Of a stretch of 64,000 nt of DNA, positions 2,215 through 47,950 are shown piece by piece. The translations under genes and the position numbers were made by a program. The DNA is taken from the sequence record PP496439.1; one strand, 5' to 3'. Position 1 is the stretch's first letter. Each line of letters begins with the position of its first letter. The notes under the pieces are model-generated. The model had not been told where the DNA came from, did not search any database, and saw only the letters and a program-made list of their open reading frames with translations.

Positions 2215-2277
2215 GAGGTTTTAATCCTGTGCAGGAAAATCAGAAGACCTTGTCTGTATTGATAAGGCTAACTAGCC

Positions 2278-10828: not shown

Positions 10829-10877
10829 ATTGCATTCCTCTCGGGATAGGGGTGCGCCGTCCGTGGCGCGTTGTCGC

Positions 10878-11039
10878 TTAGTTGATGGCCGGGAATTCGA
10901 TCAGCAAATCCTTCACCTCTTGCACCGACAGCGGCAAGCCGGTGATGGGGTGAACTCTCTCGTCCCGGATTATGTCGCGCAGCCGCTGGCGCTGCTCACG
11001 GGGCGATTGGGCCTTACTGGGGGTTTTGCGTGACGGCAT
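10878..11039 (-). CDS. Small hypothetical protein (53 aa, below the ORF-track cutoff)
   Basis: Hand-translated MPSRKTPSKAQSPREQRQRLRDIIRDERVHPITGLPLSVQEVKDLLIEFPAIN, with a GGAAG SD. Confidence 0.6.
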   Translation of the reverse strand: MPSRKTPSKAQSPREQRQRLRDIIRDERVHPITGLPLSVQEVKDLLIEFPAIN

Positions 11040-11135
11040 GGTGTGGCTTCCTATTGGACAGTGGGGCGGCAGTGTGCCGCACGTGCATGATATCAGACGG
11101 GAACTATGGGTGTCAACACCCGACCGCCGCAGGTG

Positions 11136-11170
11136 AAAAAGCCCACGCAGCGGTTAGGCAGGTGGGCTTT
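11136..11170 (-). terminator. Intrinsic terminator with CTAACC loop
   Basis: GCCCAC/GTGGGC stem plus TTTTT on the minus strand. Confidence 0.75.
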
Positions 11171-11172
11171 GG

Positions 11173-11463
11173 TCAAACTAATCTCAATACCGGCTTGGGT
11201 TTTTCACCTAAATCAACGGACGCGTGCAGTTCCAGATCAAGTGCGAGCCGTATCACGTCTGAGTAGGGTTCACGCGAATGCGCCCAAACGTCTGGCAGTG
11301 TCGTACGATAGATGTGGACAATCGTGTGAAGCTCTTCCTTGGCATAGACACCTGCCCGCATCAACTGAGTAACCCGTGCACGCACCTTGGGTGTGATCCA
11401 CGTGATAAGATCCTCATACGTTCCGGTCCAGATCATCACCTGATGATTAACGCGCTTCGCCAC
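11173..11463 (-). CDS. Hypothetical protein
   Basis: 96 aa with a GGAGG SD, overlapping the upstream gene. Confidence 0.65.
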   Translation of the reverse strand: MAKRVNHQVMIWTGTYEDLITWITPKVRARVTQLMRAGVYAKEELHTIVHIYRTTLPDVWAHSREPYSDVIRLALDLELHASVDLGEKPKPVLRLV

Positions 11464-17277: not shown

Positions 17278-18881
17278 TTGTTCCACTCCTTGCGAGCCTT
17301 CAACTGGGCTTCGGTAGGGGCCACCCGAAACCGTGTGTTCTGGGGTGACAAGTTCTTGAGCAGTGTGGTGGTCACGCATTCGTGCGGCGTGATATGCAGC
17401 AGCAGGTCACTGGCTCGGGTGTACGAGACGTATTGCACGTGGGGCAACTGACCGTCTTCACAGTCGAACCAGTCATCGATCACCGCGACCCGTTCGCTCT
17501 CCATACCCTTCGCACCCCATGAGGTGTTCAGCTCCACACCTTTGCCATGGTCGTTGGCAATGATCTTGGTGATGAACGTCTTCACTTCGGCGGCGCTACC
17601 CAGGTCCCAGTTGGTGACGATGTACAGCGCAGCGTCTGCGGCATCCTTGATCAGTGGTTCCTTTGCCTCCTTACGCAAATCATCCAACGCTTTAACGAAG
17701 TCAAGAGTGGACTTGCGACCACAACGCATGGCGACACCGATCACTTGTTCCAGCACCTTGGCTTTCTTGAAGGTAACCTCCAGCCCCCGATCCATGTACT
17801 CCAGTGCGATACGGATCAGATGCTTGTTGCGAGCGCTGACCACACGTTGCACGTCGAACTTTATCATGCTCTTGATGCGGTACGGATCTTTCTTGGTGTG
17901 CGCCGTCAGCATCTTGACTTGCCCACCCTCGGCGAAGGCTTCCAGCGGCACATTGGGGAAGCGACCTTTGACGAATTCAACTATCTTCGACTTGGACCGG
18001 TATGTGGTGGTCGATGGCAGGCGCTTGGCGTTGAACTCTTTGAACATGTCAGCCATGCCCGCGCTCAACCCACCTCGGAACGCATAGATGGCCTGCCATG
18101 GATCACCAACGAAGACGAACAACATGCCCGGCTTCAATCGGCGGAATAGGCGAAGCGTGTCGTGCTGCACAAGGTTGAAGTCTTGGAACTCATCGACGAA
18201 CAACACGTCCGGCAGGATCTTCGCCAGCTTGGCGTACTGCGTGCGGATAAAGCTGTTGGCCAGAACCATGCGGCTCATATCGTTGAAGTCTACCGACGAC
18301 GTGGTCTCGTCACTGGCTTCCAGCGCCTCACAGATTTCAGGAAGCAGCGGCACCACCTTCTCATGTGGGATCAGGAAACGATACTTGCCGGTGATCAGTT
18401 CCCTGATCTGCTTCGCGTCGCTGTAGGGAATGCCCAATTCACGGATACGCTCTCCGTGCCAACGGATGTCCTTGTTCTTCCGGGGTCCATCTTGGGGGAA
18501 CAGTGCATCCACCACCTGGAACCACTTGTCGAACATGATCGGTACGGCCTTGGAACCCGTCAAGGTCTTGAACAACTCCAGGCCGTAGCTGTGCATGGTG
18601 GAACTGGAGACTGCCCGATCCTTAATACGCTGATCGAACACCTTGGCGTTGTCCGTGTTGAACACGATGGCGCGCATGGTCAGCTTCGGGCACTCCTTAC
18701 GAATGCGGCGGATAGTCTCGATGATCAGGGTGGTCTTACCCGATCCCGCACCGGCATCGATGCCCACTGCGTCTTGTGGCTTGCCAGTGTACAAGTCTTT
18801 AGGCATCGACTTGGCTTTCTTCAAGATCTCGTTGAAGATGTCATTCTGTTGCTTGGACCAAACTCTTTCAGTAGTGGACAT
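17274..18881 (-). CDS. SF1 UvrD/Rep-like DNA helicase
   Basis: AGAGSGKTT, VDEFQD, VGDPWQAIYAFRGG, YRS, AKGMESE and YVSYTRA motifs. Confidence 0.9.
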   Translation of the reverse strand: MSTTERVWSKQQNDIFNEILKKAKSMPKDLYTGKPQDAVGIDAGAGSGKTTLIIETIRRIRKECPKLTMRAIVFNTDNAKVFDQRIKDRAVSSSTMHSYGLELFKTLTGSKAVPIMFDKWFQVVDALFPQDGPRKNKDIRWHGERIRELGIPYSDAKQIRELITGKYRFLIPHEKVVPLLPEICEALEASDETTSSVDFNDMSRMVLANSFIRTQYAKLAKILPDVLFVDEFQDFNLVQHDTLRLFRRLKPGMLFVFVGDPWQAIYAFRGGLSAGMADMFKEFNAKRLPSTTTYRSKSKIVEFVKGRFPNVPLEAFAEGGQVKMLTAHTKKDPYRIKSMIKFDVQRVVSARNKHLIRIALEYMDRGLEVTFKKAKVLEQVIGVAMRCGRKSTLDFVKALDDLRKEAKEPLIKDAADAALYIVTNWDLGSAAEVKTFITKIIANDHGKGVELNTSWGAKGMESERVAVIDDWFDCEDGQLPHVQYVSYTRASDLLLHITPHECVTTTLLKNLSPQNTRFRVAPTEAQLKARKEWNK

Positions 18882-18912
18882 TGGTTTACCTTAACGCTTC
18901 ACGGTTTCCATC

Positions 18913-18946
18913 CATTTACACGAGGCCTATGCGCGTGGGGTAAATG
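18913..18946. promoter_or_regulatory. Divergent pair of GTAAATG elements at the strand switch
   Basis: 18913-18919 (minus) faces the helicase. 18940-18946 (plus) faces the ligase-like gene. Confidence 0.55.
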
Positions 18947-19008
18947 AGCGTATAGCAATCGAATGCGTGGAATTAGCCCTTAACGGCGTCCCCACTAGTG
19001 GAGAACAC

Positions 19009-20487
19009 ATGAAATCTGTAGCCGTTGACTACCAAAAGATAGCCAAGGAATGCCAGTGCACCGAGCTGCCTTCCAAGGTAAGAGTTACTCGTGCACGGGT
19101 CTATCCAAACTTGAGGACGTGCCTACTCTTCCTCAAGTACGATGCCAAAGGTGAACTGGTACAAGCCGAGATCACTGCGCCGTACGACACGTCCACCGAG
19201 CCAAAGGTGAGGGTGCTCAAACATCCTGACAAGAAGTCCGACTTCCTTTCATTATATAGGGCGCTGATCCGCCACCAGATCATACCCGAGTCTATTCCGA
19301 AGAAAGGTAACGGGATTGCACCAACGCTGGAGGTCATCGGCACACTGGTGAGCCTGCTGCCGGAACGGGATGTCGAAACCTTCCGTACGCTGACCCCGGC
19401 CATCCAGACTGGCAGCGTCATGTACGTCCCGCTGGTCACGTCCCGGCCAATGCCCATGGTGCAACACTGGATACCTGTTGACCAGCATTCAGAGCTGGGC
19501 ATGATCGAGCTGGTCGATACGGATAGCAAGCCTTTCCTTAATCAGTGGGTCAACAGGTTGAGCAACACCGCCACTGGTTATGTGATCTACACCCCCGAAG
19601 GCTCACACGGTCAGGAACTAGCCTGCTTCCGGGTGCCCAATGTGCAAGGGGAGGAACTGTGTGTGGTCAAGAAGGTTGACTTCACCCTGACTGTTGCTCG
19701 CACGCTCAAGCCGGTACTGACTGTATCCACCAAGAGTACTCGGGCAGTGTCCCGCATTCCCCTACCCCACTATCTGATGCTGCGCAATCACCACATAAAG
19801 GTGGGCACGGTTATTTCCCTGCGTCGTAACGACCGAGGTGGGTTGGTGTACCATGAGACGGTGGCCGAGGAAGGCATGACGCCCCTGCCACTGTGCCCAC
19901 ACTGCCACAGTGGCTCTGTGCTGAGAGGTAGTAGCAATGACGTGTACTGCAATAACGATTCATGCCGAGGCCTAGCCATCGTGCGACTTCGCTACATCTT
20001 GAACAACAAGCTGGACGTCAAGTACCTGAGCGACAATAAGGTAACAGCGCTGATCAATGACAAGCAGGACCTGTTCAGCTTGCTTAAGACACCGACTCAC
20101 CTATTGCGGCACAGAGCGGGCTTCGGTGCACGTACGGTGGATGCGCTGGAAGAGAAGCTGAACACTATCGCCGGTCTTCCACTGCACACGCTGGCCGAGA
20201 TGTCCTGCGCTTTCTACAACGTGGGTGTGCCCCCGCTGGATGAGATGGTGTTCAAGAAGATCTTTTCCGTTATGTCGATTGACTACCTGAAAGCACTGCC
20301 CTCCACCGGTAAGATGTACAGCCAGTTGCTCGACATCGAAGGTATCCGCAACAACCGCGCAGTGGCTTTCCTTGCTGGCTGGCCTGCATTTCAACAGTGG
20401 ATGATAGACCTGAACGCTGCCCTACAGTCTCGCAGCGCAATCTCCTCCACGGTAAATAACCCGAAACAAATTCGAGGTGTGAAATGA
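19009..20487 (+). CDS. NAD-dependent DNA ligase homolog, probably catalytically inactive
   Basis: OB-fold segment (LKPVL...IKVGTVISLRR), CPHC...CNNDSC zinc finger and HhH (AGFGARTV) are present. No KxDG adenylation motif. Start revised to ATG 19009. Confidence 0.65.
   Translation: MKSVAVDYQKIAKECQCTELPSKVRVTRARVYPNLRTCLLFLKYDAKGELVQAEITAPYDTSTEPKVRVLKHPDKKSDFLSLYRALIRHQIIPESIPKKGNGIAPTLEVIGTLVSLLPERDVETFRTLTPAIQTGSVMYVPLVTSRPMPMVQHWIPVDQHSELGMIELVDTDSKPFLNQWVNRLSNTATGYVIYTPEGSHGQELACFRVPNVQGEELCVVKKVDFTLTVARTLKPVLTVSTKSTRAVSRIPLPHYLMLRNHHIKVGTVISLRRNDRGGLVYHETVAEEGMTPLPLCPHCHSGSVLRGSSNDVYCNNDSCRGLAIVRLRYILNNKLDVKYLSDNKVTALINDKQDLFSLLKTPTHLLRHRAGFGARTVDALEEKLNTIAGLPLHTLAEMSCAFYNVGVPPLDEMVFKKIFSVMSIDYLKALPSTGKMYSQLLDIEGIRNNRAVAFLAGWPAFQQWMIDLNAALQSRSAISSTVNNPKQIRGVK
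20452..20458 (+). promoter_or_regulatory. GTAAATR element upstream of queC-1
   Basis: GTAAATA about 25 nt before the ATG at 20484. Confidence 0.45.
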
Positions 20488-21248
20488 ACAATCAAAACAG
20501 AACTCGTATCGCTGTGCTTGTCGGCGGCGGTCTGGACTCACATGCGTACATGGTATTGAAAGCCGACCAGCCTCAGACAGACTTCATTCATGTGGACTAC
20601 GGCCAGCGGGTTGCAGTAGCCGAGAGAAACGCCGTGTTGCAAATGGCTGAGAAGCTGGGCATTGCCCGCAGCCGGGTGTACACGCTGATCTGCAACAAGA
20701 AGAATCACATGCGCAAGGTCAATGACGGTGTGGGTGTGTTGTTTGGCACCGGCCCGGTCGAGATGGACAATGCGTTTGTTAAGGGACGTAACCTGTTCCT
20801 GATTCAGAAGGCCATCGAGCTGGGCTACGGTCACGTGCACTTGACGCTGACCCAAGAGCGTGGCCGGATGTTCCCCGATGCCGATCTGGCATTCGTCCAG
20901 CTGGTTGACAACCTGATGCACCGCAGTTATGACGTGAGGGTATCCGCCCCCTACATCATGGAAGACAAGCATCGGGTGATGTTCAAGGCGTATCGGCATT
21001 GCCCCGAGTTCCTCGATATGTCTTTCACGTGCTGGGTAGGTCCTTATGTGGAATGTGGCACGTGCCCGCACTGCGTCAAGAAGGAAAAGATTCGAGCCGA
21101 GATGATCGTTGAGAAGATTGAATACGATCTCAGCAAGGATGAACGTGAGGCGCAGTGGGAGCAAGTCAAGGCAGGCTACGGCGACGCGTTGAAGCCCGCT
21201 GAGACCATCAACATGAACATTCAGGTTGTTGACGGAGGACTGAAATGA
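20484..21248 (+). CDS. queC: QueC-family ATP pyrophosphatase (paralog 1)
   Basis: GGGLDS PP-loop, DYGQR, FVKGRNL, FPD and TC...CGTCPHC zinc motif. Confidence 0.8.
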   Translation: MNNQNRTRIAVLVGGGLDSHAYMVLKADQPQTDFIHVDYGQRVAVAERNAVLQMAEKLGIARSRVYTLICNKKNHMRKVNDGVGVLFGTGPVEMDNAFVKGRNLFLIQKAIELGYGHVHLTLTQERGRMFPDADLAFVQLVDNLMHRSYDVRVSAPYIMEDKHRVMFKAYRHCPEFLDMSFTCWVGPYVECGTCPHCVKKEKIRAEMIVEKIEYDLSKDEREAQWEQVKAGYGDALKPAETINMNIQVVDGGLK

Positions 21249-21955
21249 ACAAGTTCTTAGGTTGGTTCAAGCGTCTGCTGGATAAGAAGCACAAGTCGAT
21301 CACGATGACGTTGACCGACGCCGAAGGTAAGTTGGTCACCATCCACATACCGCAAGGTGCGGGTGTCGAATACACGCTCTCGAAGTCGGGCACCCACTTG
21401 AACGTCTCAGTTAAAGACGACGTCTTCATGTTGCGCACGAATGGCGCTGGAGTCGGTGGCAGTGGAAGTTCCAAGCCCGGTCTCAACGGTGGCCCCGGCC
21501 ATACACCTATCCCCCGGTCCCCAAGCTTCACGGGCGCTGGTACGCCGAACTACGGTCACGCAGGCGACCCGCCTGTTGGTGCTCAAGCTTCGTTCCCTAT
21601 CGGCGCCCGAGCAACTGTTTCTGGTGGTGGGCGCGTTGGTGGCCTGTCAGGTGGAAGCGCAAACGGCACAATGGCTGGTGGTGGAGATGGCTTCGTTCCC
21701 TCTCCAATCCGTAGCTCTGATCGAGCTTACCTGATTAGAGGTTTGTATTACGTCATCACGACGAAGAAGATAACGGGAGAGCAATACCCGATCCATGAGC
21801 TTCTGCATTGGGGTAAGAAGTCAATCGAACTCATGGGCAAGTTCTCCACCGTCCGAGACGCTATCGACGAACTCAAATTGAAGACGGGTATCCCATTCGA
21901 AGACCTGACGGACTATCAGGTTGATTCCCTTCCCAAACGACTGTGCAAGCCTTGA
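21245..21955 (+). CDS. Gly/Pro-rich hypothetical protein
   Basis: 236 aa with an ATGA overlap and a central low-complexity linker. Confidence 0.65.
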   Translation: MNKFLGWFKRLLDKKHKSITMTLTDAEGKLVTIHIPQGAGVEYTLSKSGTHLNVSVKDDVFMLRTNGAGVGGSGSSKPGLNGGPGHTPIPRSPSFTGAGTPNYGHAGDPPVGAQASFPIGARATVSGGGRVGGLSGGSANGTMAGGGDGFVPSPIRSSDRAYLIRGLYYVITTKKITGEQYPIHELLHWGKKSIELMGKFSTVRDAIDELKLKTGIPFEDLTDYQVDSLPKRLCKP

Positions 21956-21959
21956 TCGG

Positions 21960-21966
21960 GTAAATG
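21960..21966 (+). promoter_or_regulatory. GTAAATR element upstream of the second QueC-like gene
   Basis: GTAAATGGTCCGTAACT, about 27 nt before the ATG at 21994. Confidence 0.55.
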
Positions 21967-21993
21967 GTCCGTAACTAATCCGGAGACACCAGC

Positions 21994-22812
21994 ATGACCA
22001 CTGCGCCCCCAAAGATTATCGTTGCATTCAGCGCCGGTACAGATTCAACTACAGCGGCCTACTACTATCGCAAGCTCGGCTATCAGGTAACGCTGGCCGT
22101 GTTCGATGACGGCGCATGCAACGATCCACTTGGCCCTCTGTACGATCCGAACAAGCCGAAGGACTTGACCAACTTCTCGGATGAGTTCTACGATTACGTA
22201 CGGATTCACCAAGAGCACACGGAAGGCCATCTTCAGTTCGACTTCGTGGAGATTCGTTATCCGCAACTCGCATTGCTGGAAGCCAACAAGACAGCCAAGC
22301 CCGGTCGGGACAATGCAGCAGCAGCAGAGGCTGACGGCTTGGGCTTCTGGGTCGGCTTCAAGGGCCTGATGGCAATGTTGCTGATGAGCCACGGCGCCGC
22401 CAATGGTTACGAGGCAGTAGTCTTCGGCCACATGCCGTACAACAACCATTACGAAGATGAGCTGCCCCAGAACTTCGAGCTGCTGCGTCAGTACATGGTT
22501 ACGGCCTATGGCAGCCGAGTGGAAATTCCTCAGATCTACCACCCATTCTATCGACCGAATTTCGATACCAAGGAAAAGGTTATTGAGCTGGCTCAGGCAA
22601 TCGGCGTGCCCTTGCGAGATACCTATTCGTGCCGCCGAGGTGAAGTAGAAACCCGAGGTATCCTCCTGCCACTTCTGCGTGGCGGTAACTCCAACTACGT
22701 GAGCCCCACCTACCGTTGGAAGCATTGTGGTACGTGTGAGAACTGTGTCGAACGCAAGCGAGCCTTCGCGGCGCTGGGCATGAAAGATCCTGCCCCTTAT
22801 ATGGAACATTGA
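21994..22812 (+). CDS. QueC-like ATP pyrophosphatase (paralog 2, divergent)
   Basis: FSAGTDS PP-loop, TKEKVIELAQAIGVPLRDTYSC, and HCGTCENCVERKRAF. Confidence 0.75.
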   Translation: MTTAPPKIIVAFSAGTDSTTAAYYYRKLGYQVTLAVFDDGACNDPLGPLYDPNKPKDLTNFSDEFYDYVRIHQEHTEGHLQFDFVEIRYPQLALLEANKTAKPGRDNAAAAEADGLGFWVGFKGLMAMLLMSHGAANGYEAVVFGHMPYNNHYEDELPQNFELLRQYMVTAYGSRVEIPQIYHPFYRPNFDTKEKVIELAQAIGVPLRDTYSCRRGEVETRGILLPLLRGGNSNYVSPTYRWKHCGTCENCVERKRAFAALGMKDPAPYMEH

Positions 22813-22813
22813 T

Positions 22814-23830
22814 ATGGCCCTTTCAATCTGGCCGCTGACCGAAGGTGAACTCGGTCAGGGCCTCGTCAACGAACTGAATCGTACCAGCAAGGCGCTGGTG
22901 AACCGGAGTATGTGGTCTTTGCCATTGCTCCGGCGTTTGTTTTATCGGCGCACCGAGATTGGTGTCCCGGAGCTACTCCACGTCTGTACCAGCATTCATC
23001 GGGGCAAGACTTACTTCTGCCTGTTGGTGAACTTCCGAGATGTGGTGATGGGCAACCCCGAGCAATACGGATGGGACCTAGCTGGCCGGTGGTTGTTCTA
23101 CGATGTGGATCTGCTGGATACCCCGGAGTTTAAACAGGTAAACGCGGCTATTCGTAAGGTGGCTACGGTCAACACGGTTACCTACGGTCAAGCATTCGTT
23201 CCGGATGAAGGTGGTATGGGGGAGGAGCACTGGATCAAGAAACTGAAAGGTAACTACCGCCCCCACATCTTCGGCGAAAAGTCAAAACAGGTTATCGTCA
23301 GTCAGACCTGCGGACACGCGGCTACTCACGTTCTGACCGAGGCAGTGATGTCATTCGGTATCCAGCGCGCTGAGAGATTTCTCGCGGAAGGTCAGTCGGA
23401 TGTCATGCCGGAGTTGTATGACCTACCCATGCAGCTAGCCGGTCTAGGCTCGATCCCTGGAACCCGGATTGGCACCGTGTCGCTCACCTGCCGGGATACC
23501 CGTGCGCTGATCGGTACCCTGTCGTTCTACGTTGTGGCAGGCTTGGGTCACAGTGATATCTTGTATATGCACGAGATGCTGATTGATCCGGATCCGAAGT
23601 GGAAGCCTCTATCGGTGGCCGTCAACTTGCACATTCAGGCAATCATGTATGTGCGCTATCTAAACAGCCGATCTGATCGGGCTTCGGACTTGGTTATCAA
23701 CCTCGGATTCAACTTGGACGAGAAGTACAACACATACAAAGAGGTGTTCCGTCCGAACAAGTCCGAAATGGAAATCTATACCGGCATGCACACCGAGCCC
23801 GGCGTCCCACTGTCCTGTTTCAAGGGGTAA
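22814..23830 (+). CDS. FemABX/GNAT-like (putative aminoacyl/acyl transferase) protein 1
   Basis: WIKKLKGNYRPHI segment and C-terminal INLGFNLDEKYNTYKEVF, a Fem-like (D/N)LG...YK..F pattern. Confidence 0.5.
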   Translation: MALSIWPLTEGELGQGLVNELNRTSKALVNRSMWSLPLLRRLFYRRTEIGVPELLHVCTSIHRGKTYFCLLVNFRDVVMGNPEQYGWDLAGRWLFYDVDLLDTPEFKQVNAAIRKVATVNTVTYGQAFVPDEGGMGEEHWIKKLKGNYRPHIFGEKSKQVIVSQTCGHAATHVLTEAVMSFGIQRAERFLAEGQSDVMPELYDLPMQLAGLGSIPGTRIGTVSLTCRDTRALIGTLSFYVVAGLGHSDILYMHEMLIDPDPKWKPLSVAVNLHIQAIMYVRYLNSRSDRASDLVINLGFNLDEKYNTYKEVFRPNKSEMEIYTGMHTEPGVPLSCFKG

Positions 23831-23833
23831 GAC

Positions 23834-24835
23834 ATGTACACTCCGTATTCCCAAAACAGTCTGATGCAATCGATCCCGTTGGATGACCAAGGTACATTCG
23901 CCCATCCGCCGTATACGATGGAAGGAGAGTTAACCGACGTGTGGACGAACCCCAACCTATATGGGTTCGTCAGCCTGTTGAACGGCCAGAGCAATAGCCG
24001 GGCCTATCGAGACTGGATGACCACCCACAATCTTCCAGCACTGTTCCTCGGTCCGCATCATGAAGACAACTTCTGGTTTGAATTCAGCACTGGTCTCTAT
24101 TCCAACTGCACGCTGGATTACAACGAGATCAACGTCCAAGGCAACCTGCAGGACTTCCTTGGGAGATTGACGTCATCTCGCCGTCGCTCCGTGCTCAAGG
24201 CAAAGGAAACGGATACAATGATCCACAAGGCAGGCTCGGTAGCCAACTTCAACCTGTATCATCCGGTGGAGGGTAGGCTGTATAGTCTTACCGCGATTCA
24301 CGAACGCCGGGTGATGAAAGATATTTCAGAGTTTATCGAATCGAAACTTTGGAGTATGAAGCAGACGCCTACTGACCTCACGTACGGGGCATTCACCACT
24401 CTGATGGACTACATCCGGTTGAAGCAGCGAGAGGATACGCCACTCGGCCACCTACTGCGCGCCGTTCATCTATTGGTCATTCGAGACGAACGTTCAGGGT
24501 TTATCGTGTCGGTACACCTGGTGGCGATCAACACGTTGAAAGATGATCGCCATAATCCTATCAAGACCTACTTGCACTCCTTTGCGCGCATCACTGTTCT
24601 CCCTGCACGTATCGCCCTACTCGCGTTGATCAAGGTGGTTCAAGAGTTAAACGTCACTAGTCAGTACGCGTCCCGTACACTGGCGAAGATTGACTATCTT
24701 GACGTGAGCAACGTGGTGCTGTCCGAGCGAGAGCAGTACAAGTCGGACTTCTTCACCGGCAAATGCCAAGTGCGTGCGTGGGCATCCCCGGCGCTGCTGG
24801 AACGACAGTTACCTTTCGTTACGCCGATCCCGTAA
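23834..24835 (+). CDS. FemABX/GNAT-like protein 2
   Basis: LQDFLGRLTSSRRRSVLKA and C-terminal YLDVSNVVLSEREQYKSDFF. Confidence 0.55.
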   Translation: MYTPYSQNSLMQSIPLDDQGTFAHPPYTMEGELTDVWTNPNLYGFVSLLNGQSNSRAYRDWMTTHNLPALFLGPHHEDNFWFEFSTGLYSNCTLDYNEINVQGNLQDFLGRLTSSRRRSVLKAKETDTMIHKAGSVANFNLYHPVEGRLYSLTAIHERRVMKDISEFIESKLWSMKQTPTDLTYGAFTTLMDYIRLKQREDTPLGHLLRAVHLLVIRDERSGFIVSVHLVAINTLKDDRHNPIKTYLHSFARITVLPARIALLALIKVVQELNVTSQYASRTLAKIDYLDVSNVVLSEREQYKSDFFTGKCQVRAWASPALLERQLPFVTPIP

Positions 24836-24839
24836 CTCT

Positions 24840-24846
24840 GTAAATG
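24840..24846 (+). promoter_or_regulatory. GTAAATR element
   Basis: Intergenic, about 43 nt before the ATG at 24890. Confidence 0.5.
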
Positions 24847-24889
24847 ATGGGAACAGCCCCACCATCACTTCATCTCTAGGGTAGTTCCC

Positions 24890-25942
24890 ATGCAAGACTT
24901 CGATAAGATAATGATCGATAGTAGTTTGACATCCAATCTGGTGTACGCAGGGTTGGGTAACTTGATCACGCCCCGCGCACTTGACCTGCTGATCGAACAT
25001 CAGGCTGCACTGGAAAACGTATACGCCAATCTGGAAACAGCGTATCAGATTACCCCACCCTTCCCCTGTGAAGCTGCATTCAATTACCCTGACAAAGATC
25101 CTGTGCTGGTCGCCGACTATCTGAATGCTACTCCCGCCATCCGTTGCGGAGAGCTGGCTGGATTCGAGGCAAAGCCCGGCAGTTACTACCATGCGCCCGC
25201 CGCTGGTATCTCCCCGGAACATCGCATCGACGTACGTGGTATGTCTTTGCGTGAGTTCGACCACTATCTGGTTGAGCGTAAGGAAGTATCCCGTATCACT
25301 ACCAATCTGGTGGCCGACAAGTTCCGCTGTGAGACGCATGTGTACAAAGTGGATGAAGATCATATCCTGATCCATGACGCCGAACGAGTTGGGATCAGCC
25401 AGACGGACTTCCGCCGCATGTGGGCGCAGACCCGCCGCCGGGAAATCGCTGAAAACTATCTGCAGTACATGCCCATCGAAGACTCCGCCAAGGATGATCA
25501 GGTGGTGCGACTGATCAACGAAGACGTAGCACGGGTGTTAGCCCAGAACGTCGACTACGACCGCATGATTCCGCCCGAGCTGATCTTCGATGGTCAGGGC
25601 AAGCCGGTGCTGACCGTGCTGAAAGATTGCAACGCCAAGGTGTTGGGCATTGGTGTGTACGTCATCTACAAGTCAGCTGACCCAGAGCATGACAGCGAAC
25701 TGCACTGGCGTGGCGCTTTCTACGATCACGAAGATCCTCGCGTAGCATCCATGGGCATTGAACACGCTCTGGTTGCCAGCGCACTGCACACAGCGTACGC
25801 CTGCAACGCGGTCCTCTATCTGACCAAGGCACCTAAGTCCGTGTGTGACGCATGGAAGACGGAAGTGCACCAAGGTTACGGGCTGGTCCGTAATGCGATG
25901 CCGGAACTGTCTGACACCCCTTACATTCTGGCTATCCAGTAA
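24890..25942 (+). CDS. FemABX/GNAT-like protein 3 (weakest match)
   Basis: SLREFDHYLVERKE segment, and a C-terminal GNAT-like strand/helix pattern ending LYLTKAPKSVCDAWK. Confidence 0.4.
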   Translation: MQDFDKIMIDSSLTSNLVYAGLGNLITPRALDLLIEHQAALENVYANLETAYQITPPFPCEAAFNYPDKDPVLVADYLNATPAIRCGELAGFEAKPGSYYHAPAAGISPEHRIDVRGMSLREFDHYLVERKEVSRITTNLVADKFRCETHVYKVDEDHILIHDAERVGISQTDFRRMWAQTRRREIAENYLQYMPIEDSAKDDQVVRLINEDVARVLAQNVDYDRMIPPELIFDGQGKPVLTVLKDCNAKVLGIGVYVIYKSADPEHDSELHWRGAFYDHEDPRVASMGIEHALVASALHTAYACNAVLYLTKAPKSVCDAWKTEVHQGYGLVRNAMPELSDTPYILAIQ

Positions 25943-25955
25943 ATAGCCGGTAACT
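25939..25955 (+). promoter_or_regulatory. Extended GTAAATR element
   Basis: GTAAATAGCCGGTAACT, 16/17 identical to the copy at 55744. Confidence 0.6.
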
Positions 25956-25975
25956 CCATCCATTGAGGTACTTCC

Positions 25976-28060
25976 ATGAAATCCGTGAACCCCATCTTCA
26001 AACACGTTCCCCAGTTCGACTGGCCTGTCATTCCCCGTGCGCAGTGGGAAGAGATCGTCAAGGGAAAAGAGCATGTGATGTTCGACTCCTTCTCGCAGCT
26101 CGCTCAAGTGTTGGCTATCCCGGTGAGCAGTTACCAGTTCTACTTCGAAGATGGGTCCACGTTGTTCGCCGGTCCCGAAGCAACCTTCACCGCCGCGCCG
26201 TACCCGCTGTATCAGGACCTTGAATTCGTCCTGACCCCTGACGAGACGTTGGTGCCGGGTCTTGCACTGGATACCAAACCGTGGGGCCTGTACACCGACG
26301 AATGGGTGGACAACTACGAAGGTGCGGACAAGGAAGACATCGGCAACAAGACCGGGTTCGAATTCATTCCGCTGTCGGACGCCTTGAAACTGGTGGTCCT
26401 CAACACGGAGACCATGCAGCTCCAGTACACTGCAATCGAGAGCTTCACGTACGACGGCGTGACTTACGTATACCTGCTGGCCGATGGCGTGTGCTGGGTA
26501 CTGGCGGGCAAGTCCGGTGGTCTGGTTGCCAGCGAGCATGACAAAGGTGCTGCGTTCATCATGGTGTCCCATCCCGAGTTCGCCGGGTGCAGCGTAGACA
26601 ACATGTACCCAAGTGAGTTCGGTGAAGCGGAAGCGACGTTCTACGTTCAAGACGAGGAACACAATTACCTGGACGCGGCTAACCGCATCTTCGAGGAAGC
26701 CAAGGACGTAGGCGCTGGCACTTTCCTGACCATTGAGACCGGGGATGGACTGCCGACGGCACTGGCCTACAACCTGCGTTACAGTGACGTGGCCCACGTT
26801 AACCTGCCGATGCACAACATCCACCAGTTCACGTCTCTTCACGTACGACTGGGCGAGACGCCTAACTTCTCCGAGGCCCCGGAAGCGTGCCGCATGAAAG
26901 AGGTGATGGAGTACCTGGCGGACCCCGAGTCCCCGGTAGACCATTACTGGTCTGCCATCATGGTACTGGAGAAGAACTTCCCCGGTTTCGCCGACGCCCT
27001 GAAAGACTCCAGTGTCCCAACCCGTGACATCGTGCACTCCAAACAGGCGTTCAGCTTGGAGATCGATCGCCAGTTCGGCAAGGAAGTGGCAAGCAAGATC
27101 GGCCTGAACACTGGCGTATTCGCCCAAGTGAAAGACCGTGATGAGTGGCTGACCCGTCAAGACGATTTTCCTACCGACAAGGTGGCCGTCAAGTACAACA
27201 CCAAACACTTCATCGGCATCTTCGACAAGGACGAGGTATCGAATTCCATCAACATGTGGCTGGCCGGTCAACCCGGAGAGTCGCTGATGATCGAAGAGTA
27301 CTTCGGTGAGGGCAATCAGGAATTCAACCTGTGCTATGTGATCAACGAAGAGTTCGTGCAGCCGACGCTGTTCCTGTGCGAAGTCAACAAGATCCTCGGT
27401 AATGACACCGGCGGCAAAGGTGGCAACACGCTGGCCTGCCATGATGCTCGTATTAACAAGTACCCTGAGTTCTTTGAGCCGGTCAATGCTGCGCTTGCTA
27501 ACCTGCATGAGCACGTGGAAGGTGTGAAGGGCTGGGTTGACCTGAGCTTCATGGTCCGCGACGGCATCCCTTACTTCACAGAGTGGTGCATTCGAATTGG
27601 CTGCTCCAACAACGCCACCATCGTGCGCCAGATGGAGACCCCGCTCGACGTTCTGCTGACCAACGTGGTTAACAAGGTGCATACCGAGCTGTCTTGGAAG
27701 CACTCCATGTCTGTCAGCGTGGACATCTACAGCATGCCGCTGTCCGCAGGCAATGATGCCAACATGCAGTTCACCGAGTCGCTGACCACGCCGGTCGAGA
27801 TGGTGTCCCCGCTCAATCTGGAACTGGCGGCGGAGAGTTTCTTCGACCCGATTGATTCGGCCTGGAACGCGGTGTACGACGGCTACATTGTCGAGGCGTA
27901 CAACCGATATGGCACCGTCTCGGGGTATTCCACCAACTGGAACTTCGCCTGCAATGCGGCGTACAATCACTTGAAAGATCAGTCGGTGTTGTACGGGGCA
28001 TACCGCGAAGCGCCTGCCCACCACGACCCACTGACTCTGTTCCCTTTCCTCAAGGCGTAA
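25976..28060 (+). CDS. ATP-grasp amide ligase, PurD (GAR synthetase)-like C-terminal half, with unknown N-terminal domain
   Basis: VAVK, LMIEEYFGEGNQEF, NKILGNDTGGKGGNT, and GWVDLSFMVRDGIPYFTEWCIRIG (compare PurD V.EFN.RFG). Confidence 0.65.
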   Translation: MKSVNPIFKHVPQFDWPVIPRAQWEEIVKGKEHVMFDSFSQLAQVLAIPVSSYQFYFEDGSTLFAGPEATFTAAPYPLYQDLEFVLTPDETLVPGLALDTKPWGLYTDEWVDNYEGADKEDIGNKTGFEFIPLSDALKLVVLNTETMQLQYTAIESFTYDGVTYVYLLADGVCWVLAGKSGGLVASEHDKGAAFIMVSHPEFAGCSVDNMYPSEFGEAEATFYVQDEEHNYLDAANRIFEEAKDVGAGTFLTIETGDGLPTALAYNLRYSDVAHVNLPMHNIHQFTSLHVRLGETPNFSEAPEACRMKEVMEYLADPESPVDHYWSAIMVLEKNFPGFADALKDSSVPTRDIVHSKQAFSLEIDRQFGKEVASKIGLNTGVFAQVKDRDEWLTRQDDFPTDKVAVKYNTKHFIGIFDKDEVSNSINMWLAGQPGESLMIEEYFGEGNQEFNLCYVINEEFVQPTLFLCEVNKILGNDTGGKGGNTLACHDARINKYPEFFEPVNAALANLHEHVEGVKGWVDLSFMVRDGIPYFTEWCIRIGCSNNATIVRQMETPLDVLLTNVVNKVHTELSWKHSMSVSVDIYSMPLSAGNDANMQFTESLTTPVEMVSPLNLELAAESFFDPIDSAWNAVYDGYIVEAYNRYGTVSGYSTNWNFACNAAYNHLKDQSVLYGAYREAPAHHDPLTLFPFLKA

Positions 28061-28063
28061 TCC

Positions 28064-29227
28064 ATGAGCACTCCATTCCAAGAGTTCACCCTAGAAGGGT
28101 GGATTCGCTACATGAGAGATGAAAGCATCATCTGGCGCGCGTACGCTGATGGTCATCCGGATAAGGTCGAGTTCAGCCCGGAGTGGCGTGACGAGATGTA
28201 TCGGTTGATGGTGCAGTTCAAAGATCTGCTGCCGATGTCGTTTTCCAATCCGGTGTACGGCTTCACTGAAGGTTGGCTGGAAGGGCTCGGACTCCAGCCC
28301 TTTTATGGCGATGATCCGTTCAATCCGATGGTGCAACCGCTTAGCCACCCTCTGGTGCATGTGGGGCTTCCGTTTACTCTGAGCGAGCTGACGGCGGGCG
28401 TATGGGACTGTCAGTCCCTGAGCGCTCACCTGGAGCGTCCGCTGCTGGTCGATACATTCGAACCGATCCCAGTGCCATCTATTAGCCTGGACGCTTACAA
28501 AGCCGTCCTGACCGTACGGGACCGGGAAGAGATCGTGATGAGTGCGGGAACCCCGGTGAACTACTTCCTCTGGTTGAATAGTCCGATCACCGAACTCAAA
28601 GACGACTTCGACGTTTATCTGGCCAGCCTGACCAAGAAGCGCCGCTACAAAGTGAAGCAGGCACTGGCGACAGTGGGCACCGAAGAGAACCCGGCTATCA
28701 GCGTCAGTACTGGATCTCGTTTCGGCGAAGGGTTGTTGTCCGATCAGGTGAACAGCATCCTCGCGACTTTCGAAGATCCGGTGGACATCGAGTGCATGCT
28801 TCTTCAGCTGCTGTTCGGGGTGGCAACCTGCAATACCCATCCGCATCTTGTCGATCTGGTTTGTGCAGACCAGCAGTTGGGGATCTTCATCAAGCGCAAC
28901 GGCCACACGATGAATTTCCTCTACAACCGTGACCCGGACAACCGCGCTGACTCAGGCATCAACCTGCTGACCCAGTACGTGCGCCATCTGCACATGAACC
29001 GCCCGGAAGGTGTGATGTACGTGGACCCGACATGTCGATATCGGCCTGACGAGGACAGTATGAACACCTACAAGCGGGTGATCACCAACGAGAACCGGTA
29101 TCACCCAATGCCGTTCGTCTCGGCTGACCCTGCGCATATTGAAGGTGTGATTACCCCGGCGTTCATTGCAGGTCATTGGCAGATGTCGGCGTCCAATGGC
29201 CCGGCCAATCCTGAGATGATGGAGTAA
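28064..29227 (+). CDS. FemABX/GNAT-like protein 4
   Basis: DDFDVYLASLTKKRRYKVKQA is the clearest Fem-like motif. C-terminal YVDP...NTYKRVI. Confidence 0.6.
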   Translation: MSTPFQEFTLEGWIRYMRDESIIWRAYADGHPDKVEFSPEWRDEMYRLMVQFKDLLPMSFSNPVYGFTEGWLEGLGLQPFYGDDPFNPMVQPLSHPLVHVGLPFTLSELTAGVWDCQSLSAHLERPLLVDTFEPIPVPSISLDAYKAVLTVRDREEIVMSAGTPVNYFLWLNSPITELKDDFDVYLASLTKKRRYKVKQALATVGTEENPAISVSTGSRFGEGLLSDQVNSILATFEDPVDIECMLLQLLFGVATCNTHPHLVDLVCADQQLGIFIKRNGHTMNFLYNRDPDNRADSGINLLTQYVRHLHMNRPEGVMYVDPTCRYRPDEDSMNTYKRVITNENRYHPMPFVSADPAHIEGVITPAFIAGHWQMSASNGPANPEMME

Positions 29228-29229
29228 CC

Positions 29230-30177
29230 ATGGCAAAGCACAAGGTCAAAAGGTTGGAAATCAACCACATCTACGACTTCTACCCGTTGTATCAGGTGAT
29301 GTACGGGCGTGGCATGGAGACCAAAGCGTTCGAGGTCTCCAAGTTCGCCAAGATGGTGCTGGACTTCGAAGCATCAACCAGTACTCGCCGGAAGTGGGAC
29401 GTGCTGGAACCTTTCAGCGGTATCAGCGAGCATGAACACTTCTTCGCTGCGACCGGCCTGAACATCGAGCATTACACCGGCATGGACATCGTGGTTCCAG
29501 ATGGAGCCAAAAACGTCATTCAAGGCGACATCATCACCGACACCCTTCCGTTTCACGTCAACGCGGTGTTCGCCTTCTACTACAGCTTGCAGAATGTACG
29601 GGACGCCAAGACTGGCATGCACACGCGGGAAAAGCTGGTGGAGTTCTTCGACAACATCCTCGGCCATCTGCAAGTCAATGCGAACAAGAGCCGTATGCCC
29701 GCAGTGTTCGCTTTCCACCTTGACCAGCCTGAAGACCCTAATTACTATCTGACGTCCCGTGCCGACGTTGGAGGTGAACAGTCATGGACCGCACCCGCGT
29801 GTGGTCTGCTGGGGCAGTGGGTCAAGTGCAAACCGACTGACACTCTGGAAGTGAAGTGCAATCTGGACACCTGGTACAACCGTGTGCAGTGCACCGCGTA
29901 CGATCAGGCGGAGGATATCCAGATTCTGGTAAATGGGCGAGTAGTGGCGACCGTTGAGATCGAACAGCCGTTCACTCATCGGGTCTGGACCGAGCATGAG
30001 GTGATCGACATCCTGCGGGGTCTGGACTACAATCTGCACTTCCACATGTACAACGGCACCATCTCCAATTACGACTTCTTGATGACCCGTTTGGAAGACA
30101 AGCCCGTTCCCGGCTATGAAGAGGCTAATACTAATCAGATGACAACTGATATGCTGGTTGTCGTTAATCCGAGGTAA
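29230..30177 (+). CDS. Class I SAM-dependent methyltransferase-like protein A
   Basis: VLEPFSG (motif I), GMDI, IQGDI and AVFAFYYSL. Confidence 0.65.
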   Translation: MAKHKVKRLEINHIYDFYPLYQVMYGRGMETKAFEVSKFAKMVLDFEASTSTRRKWDVLEPFSGISEHEHFFAATGLNIEHYTGMDIVVPDGAKNVIQGDIITDTLPFHVNAVFAFYYSLQNVRDAKTGMHTREKLVEFFDNILGHLQVNANKSRMPAVFAFHLDQPEDPNYYLTSRADVGGEQSWTAPACGLLGQWVKCKPTDTLEVKCNLDTWYNRVQCTAYDQAEDIQILVNGRVVATVEIEQPFTHRVWTEHEVIDILRGLDYNLHFHMYNGTISNYDFLMTRLEDKPVPGYEEANTNQMTTDMLVVVNPR

Positions 30178-30179
30178 TA

Positions 30180-31097
30180 ATGGCTAAGCCCAAGATCCCT
30201 ACACGAACCATCCCCACGTTGTACCAAGACTGGGGGTTGTACAGCGCCATCTGCGAACTGCCGCAGGAGACGATGCTGATGATGTCGCGCTTCGTGGCAG
30301 ACCGGACCATCGAACATGCCGAGCGCCATGACCTGGAAAGTGTGGCGATCATGGAGCCCTTTAGCGGGCCGATCCCGTATTACGAGCCAGACATCCGAAG
30401 CTTCCTGACTCGCGCCCGTGTTGACCTGGATACGTACGATCATGTCGAGTACCTTGATCATGGTGGATTGTCGGAAGACAACAATATCATCATCGGTGAC
30501 ATCACCACCATCGACCTGAAACAGAAATACGACGTCATCTACGGCAGTTACGGCAGCTTGGCCTGCCTGCTGCTGGATCACACGCACAACAAAGCTTACG
30601 AGAAGTCGCACGCGGCGCTGGTCAACATTCGCGAGCACCTGAAACCCAACGGCATCTTCGTCCTGAACGCCAACGGATCCAGCGAAAGCCTGCTGAATAA
30701 CCTGTTGAACTCCGATGAGCCGGATCAAGAGATTCGCGTCCGTCCGGGATCGCAGTTGGGCAAGGCGTTCCGAATCAAACCAGACAGTAACGCGCTGCTT
30801 CGTTTCTCCTACAACGTGGAGTACGACCGACGCACCACCTGCACCATGTGCCACTACAGCGATATGGTGCTGTCTGTAAATGGAGTTGACATCCAGCGCT
30901 GGGAGGTGGAATCCCCGACGTATCTTGCGCCGCTGGATGAACCCGAACTAATTCGAATGGCAGGTATGGCTGGTTTCAATCTGGAAAACACTGAGTTCTA
31001 CGGATTGGACACCACCGGTTATCCTGCCTTCTTCAAAATGGATACGGTCTGCGACGGGTCATGGTCACCCGCCGAGTTCGTAGTCTTTCGCACCTAA
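30180..31097 (+). CDS. Class I SAM-dependent methyltransferase-like protein B
   Basis: IMEPFSG, IIGDI, YDVIYGSYGSL and HLKPNGIFVLN. Confidence 0.7.
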   Translation: MAKPKIPTRTIPTLYQDWGLYSAICELPQETMLMMSRFVADRTIEHAERHDLESVAIMEPFSGPIPYYEPDIRSFLTRARVDLDTYDHVEYLDHGGLSEDNNIIIGDITTIDLKQKYDVIYGSYGSLACLLLDHTHNKAYEKSHAALVNIREHLKPNGIFVLNANGSSESLLNNLLNSDEPDQEIRVRPGSQLGKAFRIKPDSNALLRFSYNVEYDRRTTCTMCHYSDMVLSVNGVDIQRWEVESPTYLAPLDEPELIRMAGMAGFNLENTEFYGLDTTGYPAFFKMDTVCDGSWSPAEFVVFRT

Positions 31098-31107
31098 CGA
31101 GGTTCCT

Positions 31108-47949: not shown

Positions 47950-47950
47950 C

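Follow-up and report, generated by a model that had tools for sequence, protein, structure and literature searches.

Two divergent QueC-family proteins of Pseudomonas phage vB_PpuM-Amme-1 and their possible role in hypermodification of DNA with 7-deazaguanines

Why should a lytic phage carry two QueC-family proteins that resemble neither each other nor the canonical enzyme of 7-deazaguanine synthesis? The question arises from the genome of Pseudomonas phage vB_PpuM-Amme-1 (PP496439.1), of which the last 64 kb (record 138199-202198) are referred to here as the window. The phage, which belongs to the Estonian CEPEST collection, is a lytic myovirus that infects P. putida and has a genome of 202 kb. 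Positions are those of the window unless given as record positions. The two proteins, which we call QueC1 and QueC2, are PP-loop ATP pyrophosphatases whose open reading frames (ORFs) already bear the GenBank label "QueC-like queuosine biosynthesis protein", and the region is common to eight sister phages at 86-99% DNA identity. A preliminary description of the window had drawn attention to the pair because its PP-loops, GGGLDS and SAGTDS, depart from SGGLDS while both proteins keep a C-terminal Cys zinc motif; we read the same features directly from the sequence (Table 1). With moderate confidence, we favor the reading that the Amme-1 genes encode a 7-deazaguanine DNA hypermodification pathway in which the paired QueCs serve to place an amine, probably beta-lysine, on the C7 carboxyl.

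Both ORFs lie on the plus strand and match the Pfam QueC family (PF06508), as the preliminary description had recognized, with QueC1 matching over its full length and QueC2 in its C-terminal half only. Judged by their sequences, neither is a canonical QueC. Against the equivalog model for canonical QueC (TIGR00364, cut-off 150.3 bits), QueC1 scores 61.8 bits and QueC2 23.7 bits; for comparison, a canonical QueC of Vibrio phage GR7B reaches 204 bits on the Pfam QueC model. We compared the residues of the pair with the motifs and mutant data given by Libby et al. 2026 (PMC13329287), according to which Y35, R99, Y131, and Y189 are essential in Escherichia coli QueC and Y131F is partly active. The SGGxDS loop occurs in neither paralog, although its D and S are retained and QueC2 fits the looser SxGxDS. 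QueC1 has YGQ(x)5E, a variant without the His that is found in Cap9, together with GRN; it carries FPDA where canonical QueC has YPDC, and CW, at x7 spacing, where the latter has CY. QueC2 contains no equivalents of Y35, Q37, R99/N100, or Y189, and at the canonical positions it has DDGA..., VGFK, YEDE, and CRRG instead. All four zinc-site cysteines are present in both proteins; where canonical QueC has C(x)8CxxCxxC, QueC1 has x7 and QueC2 x31 between the first two. The ESM Atlas model of QueC2 aligns with QueC folds from single-domain QueC clusters at TM-scores of 0.68-0.71 by query and 0.75-0.85 by match. An earlier proposal that one of the paralogs makes preQ0 or 7-amido-7-deazaguanine (ADG) is not borne out by these comparisons: neither protein has the canonical signature or reaches the TIGR00364 cut-off.

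QueC1 and QueC2 can barely be aligned with each other, sharing one 17-residue match around the CGTC motif. In the Protein Data Bank (PDB), the sole match of QueC1 at E<=1 is Cap9 (9nto_B, 2.6e-8), with no canonical QueC structure. A word-indexed homologue search with QueC1 returned same-genus proteins only, whereas HMMER, run exhaustively against 1.84 billion cluster representatives, yielded 498 matches at E<=1e-3 (46 at E<=1e-10), the nearest being proteins of 189-213 aa with 33-42% identity. The QueC1-type family has the signature GGGLDS / YGQ(x)5E / GRN / FPD[AC] / TCW...ECGxCxHC, with a loop consensus of GGGxDS. A profile built from QueC2 and one metagenomic homologue recovered a family (P0153-P0159) at 32-50% identity, after which identity fell abruptly to <=26% for ordinary QueCs. 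The QueC2-type signature is S[AG]GxDS / DDGP.N + an insert of ~20-25 residues / VGFK / HY[KE]DE / SCRRG / HCGTCENC, and SAGxDS is present in six of nine sequences. The departures of the two PP-loops from the canonical form are not chance, because each is conserved across its own paralog subfamily.

A phylogeny against other QueC lineages had been proposed in the preliminary description, and we built a maximum-likelihood tree of 58 sequences. The QueC1-type sequences form one clade and the QueC2-type sequences another (100/97 each); the latter is nested with canonical QueCs as sister to the QueC domain of Gat-QueC (97/89). A second QueC-like protein of GR7B falls inside the QueC1-type clade on a long branch. 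The ratio of nonsynonymous to synonymous substitution rates (dN/dS) between Amme-1 and its sister phage Peetri is 0.13 for QueC1 and 0.09 for QueC2. The latter value and the conserved motifs peculiar to QueC2-type proteins show that QueC2 is no relic. Rather than a recent duplication, the two genes appear to represent two ancient QueC subfamilies, each conserved in its own right and acting as a pair. PADLOC was of no help in telling Cap9 from canonical QueC, as its QueC model matches all of these proteins.

The pairing recurs outside the Amme-1 genus. A QueC1-type gene followed in tandem by a QueC2-type gene, and usually then by a homologue of the Amme-1 gene A_338 (~310-340 aa), occurs in at least six metagenomic phage lineages, represented by contigs L015/L016, L017, L019, L020/L021, L022, and L023/L024 (Table 1). 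A gene resembling tRNA-guanine transglycosylase (TGT) lies immediately upstream of the QueC1-type gene in L015, L020, and the P0005 contigs. From these recurring gene orders, we therefore take the core of the system to be the TGT-like, QueC1-type, QueC2-type, and A_338-type genes, together with those for synthesis of 7-carboxy-7-deazaguanine (CDG). The amine-related partners differ by lineage: a KamA-family aminomutase in Amme-1, GR7B, and L015; AdoMet_dc and Spermine_synth proteins in L020; and a GNAT protein in L023. In L020, the genes for the S-adenosylmethionine (AdoMet)-decarboxylase-like (5898-6266) and spermine/spermidine-synthase-like (10745-11425) proteins flank the pair, with no aminomutase, which suggests a polyamine-type decoration. 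The QueC genes of other lineages abut or overlap with no ORF inserted between them. In Amme-1, the TGT-like gene appears to have moved ~77 kb from the pair, and a genus-specific ORF (21245-21955) to have been inserted between the QueC genes. Two further contig observations may be recorded here. On L014 (1-3022), genes for a PurD-like ATP-grasp protein, an Amidoligase_2-like protein, and a QueC1-type protein follow one another in overlapping frames. A 529-aa protein encoded upstream of the pair in L023 (7419-9008) was considered as a TGT-like candidate and ruled out; it has a PP-loop, SGGKES, and a Cys-rich motif, and matches QueC1-type proteins weakly (5e-4).

The genes that would supply the deazaguanine are also present. 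A QueE-like radical-SAM protein, the candidate CDG synthase, and GTP cyclohydrolase I (FolE) are encoded 35-38 kb downstream of the QueC pair among DNA polymerase, clamp, and helicase genes, in agreement with the preliminary description. The NCBIfam QueE models match the N terminus alone of the QueE-like protein. The gene order polA-queE-x-clamp-x-folE is found in Vibrio phage GR7B and phage NCTB as well, so that deazaguanine genes are embedded in the replication genes of three distant phage lineages. Two ORFs near these genes were considered and rejected: a 408-aa ORF between queE and folE is the sliding clamp (phrog_947) rather than a DpdA, and a 129-aa ORF beside folE (58331-58720) has no PTPS signal that would identify a QueD. 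Small ORFs with no assigned function are interleaved with queE, clamp, and folE (56764-57108, 58331-58720, and 59480-60061), and GR7B and NCTB have similarly sized ORFs at the corresponding places. The 193-aa member of the Amme-1 set matches phrog_17451; these ORFs may encode further pathway or replication accessory proteins.

The earlier statement that queD, tgt, and dpdA are missing holds within the 64-kb window but not for the genome, where the genome-wide search for dpdA and queD that the preliminary description had advocated located a QueD-like gene (Amme1_00020) and a TGT/DpdA-like gene (Amme1_00106), both outside the window. The latter escaped phmmer searches of all ORFs that used DpdA1, DpdA2, and QueD as queries (best E 0.53); a scan for the CxCxxC zinc motif of TGT enzymes revealed it, and Pfam supplied confirmation. 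Its protein contains DSGGFQ, TSDAS, and CNCPVC...HN (CxCxxC...HN), and so has both the catalytic Asp motifs and the CxCxxC...H zinc site of the TGT-family fold. Three homologues share DSGGFQ, LD(I/V)P, TSD(A/S)S, and CxCPxC...HN without variation. Conservation is 97-100% within the genus, with more distant homologues in Vibrio phages GR7B and GR11A (51-53% identity), 228-kb Xanthomonas/Erwinia phages (35%), NCTB (29%), and Achromobacter/Burkholderia phages (23-25%). Neither phmmer with DpdA1 of three phages nor tblastn (E<=1e-3) against Queuovirinae, nt-1/KVP40-like, Campylobacter, Cellulophaga, and halovirus records gave a match to this protein. Set against DpdA1, DpdA2, and bacterial DpdA sequences, it may represent a further DpdA subfamily. 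The C terminus is a basic tail of ~55 residues rich in Lys, Arg, and Ser that could bind nucleic acid; this tail is missing from the L015 homologue. The structure model of the family was made from a shallow alignment, with a mean predicted local distance difference test score (pLDDT) of 44.

The QueC pair belongs to a putative operon of twelve genes on one strand (19009-32343), with overlaps or gaps of <=54 nt. We infer the operon from this tight spacing alone; promoter and terminator counts in a scan of 18.5-33.5 kb were not above those in shuffled sequence. All twelve genes are under purifying selection (dN/dS 0.07-0.25, Amme-1 versus Peetri). The last encodes a radical-SAM/PLP 2,3-aminomutase that matches the lysine 2,3-aminomutase structure 2A5H at 7.5e-79, is 51% identical to GR7B_00113, and belongs to the KamA family by its TIGR00238 score (275.5 bits, cut-off 199.2). 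It keeps CxxxCxxC (equivalents of C125, C129, and C132) as well as equivalents of R134, D293, D330, and K337, which bind lysine and PLP in 2A5H. The enzyme is most likely a lysine 2,3-aminomutase that supplies beta-lysine, where lysine is favored only by the two conserved Asp residues, which contact the epsilon-amine of lysine. An ATP-grasp ligase of 694 aa, with the ligase region at residues ~227-690, resembles PurD: a profile of four homologues gave nine significant matches in the PDB (E <=0.13), all of them PurD and the best at 1.1e-10, with FliG the sole other row at a nonsignificant E of 0.45. This ligase is 38% identical to GR7B_00114 and has homologues in L014 and L015.

Other operon proteins are less readily classified. 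A_338, which completes the conserved triad, has family motifs PHFFGEKSK and GxNFDxxGxYK and is possibly a tandem-GNAT, FemAB/Acetyltransf_6-like protein; its Atlas language-model features (Mig-14, Acetyltransf_6, FemAB, and LPG_synthase_C at 0.92-0.95) serve as a lead only, and the AlphaFold2 model of its family, from a shallow alignment, is unusable (pLDDT 42). A_387 is possibly a FemAB/Acetyltransf_6-like GNAT, from Atlas features (0.91-0.93) that are likewise a lead only. Two weaker candidate copies of A_387 occur in L022, matching GR7B_00115 at 4.3e-6 with no direct phmmer match to A_387 itself (E<=1e-3). In single-sequence hhalign comparisons among the family-less cluster proteins, only the A_387/GR7B_00115 and A_315/A_305 pairs were recovered.

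Taking these family memberships, motifs, conservation, gene linkage, and purifying selection together, we propose a pathway whose chemistry is a prediction at every step, as are the amine used and DNA as the target. The FolE, QueD-like, and QueE-like enzymes of the phage would make CDG. QueC1, which retains residues common to Cap9 and QueC, would adenylate the C7 carboxyl of CDG and hand it to an amine, giving an amide by analogy with Cap9 and its protein N-terminal substrate. QueC2, with its remodeled pocket, could then perform a second ATP-dependent activation of the C7 substituent, either converting the amide to an amidine or extending it. The amine in Amme-1 would probably be beta-lysine made by the aminomutase of the operon, and the PurD-like ligase and GNAT/FemAB-like proteins may add or extend amide bonds. 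The transglycosylase would replace guanine in phage DNA with the deazaguanine, either already decorated or still to be decorated. The coupling of an amine such as beta-lysine, already suggested in the preliminary description, is plausible in the context of the aminomutase, the ligase, and the closeness of QueC1 to Cap9; either paralog might do the coupling, and the product may be an amide or an amidine. More tentatively, and with something less than even confidence, we suggest that the products are novel DNA bases in which the C7 carboxyl is joined to beta-lysine (or to a polyamine in other lineages) and possibly extended, made by two new QueC subfamilies through Cap9-like amide ligation and a further adenylation, and installed by a new DpdA-type subfamily.

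Vibrio phage GR7B (MT366760, L012) offers an instructive variation. It keeps the LigA-like protein that precedes the QueC genes in Amme-1, a distant QueC1-type protein, the A_387 homologue, the ATP-grasp ligase, and KamA. Where the QueC2-type gene would be, there is a canonical QueC and a DUF5591 protein, GR7B_00119 (6503-7510; DUF5591 2e-6), which is annotated only as hypothetical, adjoins both the canonical QueC and the divergent QueC-like gene, and has PCAPDKPY, the PCxxxKPY motif of ArcS. In archaeosine synthesis, ArcS, Gat-QueC, and QueF-L are interchangeable amidine-forming enzymes (PMC10516641). Because the QueC2-type clade and the Gat-QueC QueC domain are sister groups and these three enzymes substitute for one another, there are hints that a QueC2-type protein and a QueC plus an ArcS-like protein represent alternative routes to a similar late step.

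Several observations weigh against the proposed pathway, and the arrangement in GR7B is among them: a canonical QueC and an ArcS-like protein take the place of QueC2 there, while a distant QueC1-type gene, the ATP-grasp ligase, and KamA are kept, which makes the proposed division of labor tentative. The aminomutase misses the equivalog cut-offs for lysine (AblA, 311 bits of the required 525), glutamate (300/650), and arginine (291/600) mutases, and the three hidden Markov models (HMMs) score it so alike that they do not fix its substrate. The GNAT/FemAB-like assignments come from language-model similarity alone. Similarity of the TGT-like protein to known DpdA enzymes is weak (nt-1 DpdA2 5e-4 pairwise; bacterial DpdA 7UI4 0.14), and its best matches are tRNA enzymes, the archaeosine TGTs (arcTGT), so that a DNA substrate is a prediction. 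The paper describing the phage collection makes no mention of QueC, queuosine, or deazaguanine; it brings up restriction and modification only as general background on restriction-modification defense and mentions no restriction resistance of Amme-1. DNA modification in this phage is a prediction from its genes.

It is rather unlikely that the pathway is an ordinary one in which QueC1 is a divergent yet working preQ0 or ADG synthase whose product the DpdA-like enzyme would insert, in the manner of CAjan, CP220, and 9g-type phages, with QueC2 redundant or with QueC2, the aminomutase, and the ligases unrelated to it. QueC1 retains equivalents of Y35, Q37, E42, the RN pair, an aromatic residue at 131 (where Y131F is partly active; PMC13329287), and D133; CDG genes and a transglycosylase are present in Amme-1, and the relative GR7B has a fully canonical QueC of 204 bits. 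QueC1 scores, however, below the 150.3-bit equivalog cut-off and matches Cap9 rather than any canonical QueC structure at E<=1. The QueC1-type gene recurs strictly in tandem with QueC2-type and A_338-type genes, often in overlapping frames, which points to one pathway, and the conserved motifs and low dN/dS of QueC2 argue that it is not a relic. That same closeness to Cap9, the best solved-structure match of QueC1, invites the thought that QueC1 and the TGT-like protein act on protein instead, attaching CDG to the N terminus of a phage or host protein as Cap9/Cap10 of type IV CBASS (cyclic oligonucleotide-based antiphage signaling system) or QatC would, for instance as counter-defense or as a regulatory switch. 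In agreement with this idea, QueC1 has YxQ(x)5E and C(x)7C as Cap9 does (PMC13329287), and a QueC-like gene beside a TGT-like gene recalls the Cap9-Cap10 arrangement (bioRxiv 10.1101/2025.04.06.647259). We nevertheless give it only a small chance, as the genome has no CD-NTase gene and no ORF with an M[GS]G[GS]G N terminus, the TGT-like protein has no PADLOC match and no Cap10 among its PDB matches, and a whole CDG pathway among phage replication genes is typical of DNA-modifying phages.

A slightly smaller chance attaches to a tRNA target, whereby the TGT-like enzyme would put a phage-made deazaguanine derivative into host tRNA and reprogram translation. In its favor, this protein matches arcTGT best (1IQ8 at 1.5e-3 with the single sequence and 4.6e-5 with the family profile; TIGR00432 at 4.6e-10). 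Known DpdA enzymes are themselves TGT relatives, though, and no PUA or C-terminal tRNA-binding domain is detectable in the protein, which has the lysine-rich basic tail instead. The sole tRNA that ARAGORN predicts in the genome, Gly(GCC) at record 8184-8261 (L003), lies inside the coding sequence Amme1_00006 and is probably a false positive, and the host has a queuosine pathway of its own. All phages with 7-deazaguanine synthesis genes have so far been DNA-modifying (PMC10516641). The presence of a TGT/DpdA-like gene in the genome, and directly upstream of the QueC pair in relatives, favors DNA, in line with the earlier preference for DNA over tRNA. We regard it as highly improbable that the pathway yields a free metabolite, a conjugate of a deazapurine with an amino acid, made during infection like a nucleoside antibiotic and never incorporated into a polymer. 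The set of a QueC homologue, a 2,3-aminomutase, an ATP-grasp enzyme, and aminoacyl-transferase-like proteins does resemble clusters for peptidyl-nucleoside antibiotics, but that product is a poor fit to a gene set whose linkage with a base-exchange enzyme of the TGT family, its catalytic motifs intact, is conserved, and which lies in the replication modules of lytic phages.

The Amme-1 proteins share features with several known systems and differ from each of them. With canonical QueC (PF06508 cluster 1, TIGR00364), they have in common the fold, the Pfam family, a PP-loop, the Lys165 equivalent, the C-terminal Cys4 zinc site, and company with FolE, QueD, and QueE. QueC2 differs in having lost YxQxHxxE and VPxRN and in having gained DDGP.N with its insert of ~20-25 aa, VGFK, HY[KE]DE, and SCRRG. 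Cap9 and QatC join CDG to a protein N-terminal amine, and attack on CDG-AMP by an amine other than ammonia is chemistry that has been shown for Cap9 (bioRxiv 10.1101/2025.04.06.647259). QueC1 resembles them in YxQ(x)5E, the RN pair, C(x)7C, and a TGT-family neighbor in relatives. The Cap9 motif set is LxSGGxDS, Y/FxQ(x)5E, RN, YxDC, and CE(x)6CxxCxxCxD in ~185 aa, whereas QueC1 has GGGLDS, FPDA, and CW in 254 aa (core ~205 aa), and the QueC1-type proteins form their own clade. Amme-1 also differs in having no CD-NTase, QatA/B/D partner, or Gly-rich N-terminal target (no CD-NTase was found in the gene contexts examined, and no genome ORF begins with M(G/S)G(G/S)GG), and it is a lytic phage whose full CDG pathway is encoded amid replication genes.

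Gat-QueC, the dPreQ0/archaeosine synthase of 9g-like Queuovirinae and archaea, provides the sister QueC domain of QueC2 and the same HCGTC zinc motif; both are QueC-derived and thought to act past preQ0 synthesis, in amidine formation. Unlike Gat-QueC, QueC2 consists of a QueC domain only (272 aa) without the class-II glutamine amidotransferase domain, and VPARN and YPDN are kept in Gat-QueC but not in QueC2. The FolE-QueD-QueE-QueC-DpdA clusters of phages (DpdA1-4) parallel Amme-1 in their full gene set, their intact TGT motifs, and a polymerase/clamp/helicase setting like that of Queuovirinae; the Amme-1 TGT-like protein stands apart in its distance from nt-1 DpdA2, and its activity on DNA is predicted. 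The ArcS-RaSEA route to archaeosine, whose intermediate is a lysine adduct of preQ0, and the PP-loop enzyme TilS, a lysidine synthase, are precedents for attaching a lysine amine to a base. The relative GR7B has the ArcS-like DUF5591 protein in the place of QueC2, whereas Amme-1 encodes no ArcS-like protein and its radical-SAM enzyme is of the KamA type, not RaSEA. Thymidine hypermodification clusters of phages ViI, M6, SP10, and phiW-14 likewise combine a conserved core with lineage-variable amino-acid or polyamine enzymes that decorate a DNA base, but the base, core enzymes, and chemistry are different, and the likeness is organizational only.

In a 2023 survey, every virus with 7-deazaguanine synthesis genes encodes DpdA, a rule that holds for Amme-1 only if the divergent TGT-like family counts as DpdA. 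The 2026 survey of QueC (PMC13329287) covers canonical QueC, QatC, Cap9, LarE, a purine-salvage cluster, WbpG-like proteins, GMP synthase, and three archaeal clusters; among the clusters it analyzed, neither the phage GGGLDS subfamily nor the QueC2-type subfamily is described. A full-text literature search for aminomutase or beta-lysine together with deazaguanine in phages gave nothing relevant, and we found no description of a paired-QueC module in the literature searched. Eight 7-deazaguanine DNA bases have been reported, all derived from CDG, preQ0, or preQ1 by small changes. If the proposed pathway is correct, an amino acid or polyamine on the C7 carboxyl would add to this base chemistry, two undescribed QueC subfamilies would gain a function, and a nucleic-acid counterpart of bacterial protein deazaguanylation would exist, linking the recently discovered amide-ligase chemistry of Cap9/QatC defense to a phage counter-measure. 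It would probably also mean a further DpdA subfamily, one with a wide distribution among the 200-260-kb myoviruses that infect Pseudomonas, Vibrio, Xanthomonas, Erwinia, Achromobacter, and Burkholderia. Such bases affect sensitivity to restriction and CRISPR, the sequencing and cloning of phages, and the use of phages against or in P. putida, and the pathway enzymes could become DNA-labeling tools.

Table 1. Features of the Amme-1 QueC cluster and CDG pathway, and gene orders around the QueC pair in metagenomic contigs (x, as in the text, marks an intervening gene)
Feature	Position	Strand	Evidence or remarks
LigA-like protein	19009-20487	+	NCBIfam LigA 4.8e-6, residues 309-408 only
QueC1, QueC1-type PP-loop ATP pyrophosphatase, 254 aa	20484-21248	+	Pfam QueC PF06508 6.9e-19, full length
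QueC1 PP-loop GGGLDS, residues 14-19	20523-20540	+	Read from sequence
QueC1 zinc motif C183-x7-C191-x2-C194-x2-C197	21030-21074	+	TCW...ECGTCPHC
236-aa ORF, Gly/Ser/Pro-rich middle	21245-21955	+	No family match; between QueC1 and QueC2
QueC2, QueC2-type PP-loop ATPase, 272 aa	21994-22812	+	Pfam QueC 2.8e-12, C-terminal half only
QueC2 PP-loop SAGTDS, residues 13-18	22030-22047	+	Read from sequence
QueC2 zinc motif C213-x31-C245-x2-C248-x2-C251	22630-22746	+	SCRRG...HCGTCENC
A_338	22814-23830	+	Homologues after the pair in L020, L022, L023, L015
A_333	23834-24835	+	No family match; homologue in L022 8e-11; dN/dS 0.10
A_350	24890-25942	+	No family match; dN/dS 0.14
PurD-like ATP-grasp ligase, 694 aa	25976-28060	+	NCBIfam purD 3.7e-7
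A_387	28064-29227	+	Homologue GR7B_00115 (hhalign 99.1%; phmmer 7e-20)
A_315	29230-30177	+	Paralogue of A_305 (hhalign 94.9%); homologue in L022 2e-24
A_305	30180-31097	+	Paralogue of A_315; Pfam Methyltransf_31, Methyltransf_12 E 0.04-0.09, below cut-off
KamA-family radical-SAM/PLP 2,3-aminomutase	31108-32343	+	Pfam Radical_SAM + LAM_C
QueE-like radical-SAM protein, CDG synthase candidate	55790-56761	+	phrog_2076 2.3e-41
Clamp	57105-58331		phrog_947
GTP cyclohydrolase I (FolE)	58730-59470	+	Pfam 3.8e-39, NCBIfam 5.7e-43
QueD-like Amme1_00020	record 18255-19457		Pfam PTPS 9.7e-8; 1.4e-30 to phage nt-1 QueD-like protein
TGT/DpdA-like Amme1_00106, 455 aa	record 81781-83151	-	Pfam TGT 4.7e-8, 32.9 bits (cut-off 26.3)
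Contigs L015/L016			FolE, TGT-like (3.1e-57 to Amme-1 protein), QueC1-type, QueC2-type, amidoligase-like, A_338-type, x, ATP-grasp-like, KamA-like
Contig L017			QueC1-type overlapping QueC2-type
Contig L019 (GCA_015232735.1, JADFZC010000695.1)	451-2390		Two QueC1-type genes, then QueC2-like gene
Contigs L020/L021			QueE-like, AdoMet decarboxylase, HNH, x, TGT-like (5.2e-29), QueC1-type, QueC2-type, spermine-synthase-like, A_338-type, helicase
Contig L022 (syntenic with Amme-1)			Helicase, dihydrofolate reductase, x, LigA-like, QueC1-type, QueC2-type, A_338-type, A_333-type, ..., topoisomerase II
Contigs L023/L024			QueD, x, x, FolE, QueE, x, PP-loop protein, GNAT, QueC1-type, QueC2-type, A_338-type
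P0005 contigs			FolE, ..., TGT, QueC1-type

The first gene of the operon encodes the LigA-like protein, with an OB fold, a zinc finger, and a helix-hairpin-helix region; an adenylation domain was not detected in it. Its ORF overlaps the start of QueC1 by 4 nt and has an alternative GTG start at 18967 in the ORF list. Homologues lie upstream of the QueC genes in GR7B and contig L022, keeping the position seen in Amme-1, and we regard the gene as syntenic context of the QueC genes rather than as an established pathway member. A full NAD-dependent ligase is also encoded in the Amme-1 genome (record 122868-124847). The 236-aa ORF between the QueC genes, which overlaps the QueC1 stop codon, is restricted to the Amme-1 genus. 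Its small N- and C-terminal domains flank a middle of ~100 residues (27 Gly in 105 residues), and it is the most variable gene of the cluster, with 77.5% amino acid identity, indels, and a dN/dS of 0.19 relative to Peetri.

Elsewhere in the window, a GDSL lipase/acylhydrolase domain (4.3e-12) forms the C-terminal part of a 544-aa protein encoded just upstream of the DNA polymerase (50015-51649). Outside the window, the genome encodes a thymidylate-synthase homologue of 365 aa, ~100 aa longer than usual, a dUTPase_2/MazG-like protein of 362 aa, and an HD-domain 5'-deoxynucleotidase-like protein (the coordinates of this pyrimidine-related set are record 26809-27906, 42363-42962, and 47741-48829). 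The set raises the question of a second DNA modification, of a pyrimidine, in this phage.

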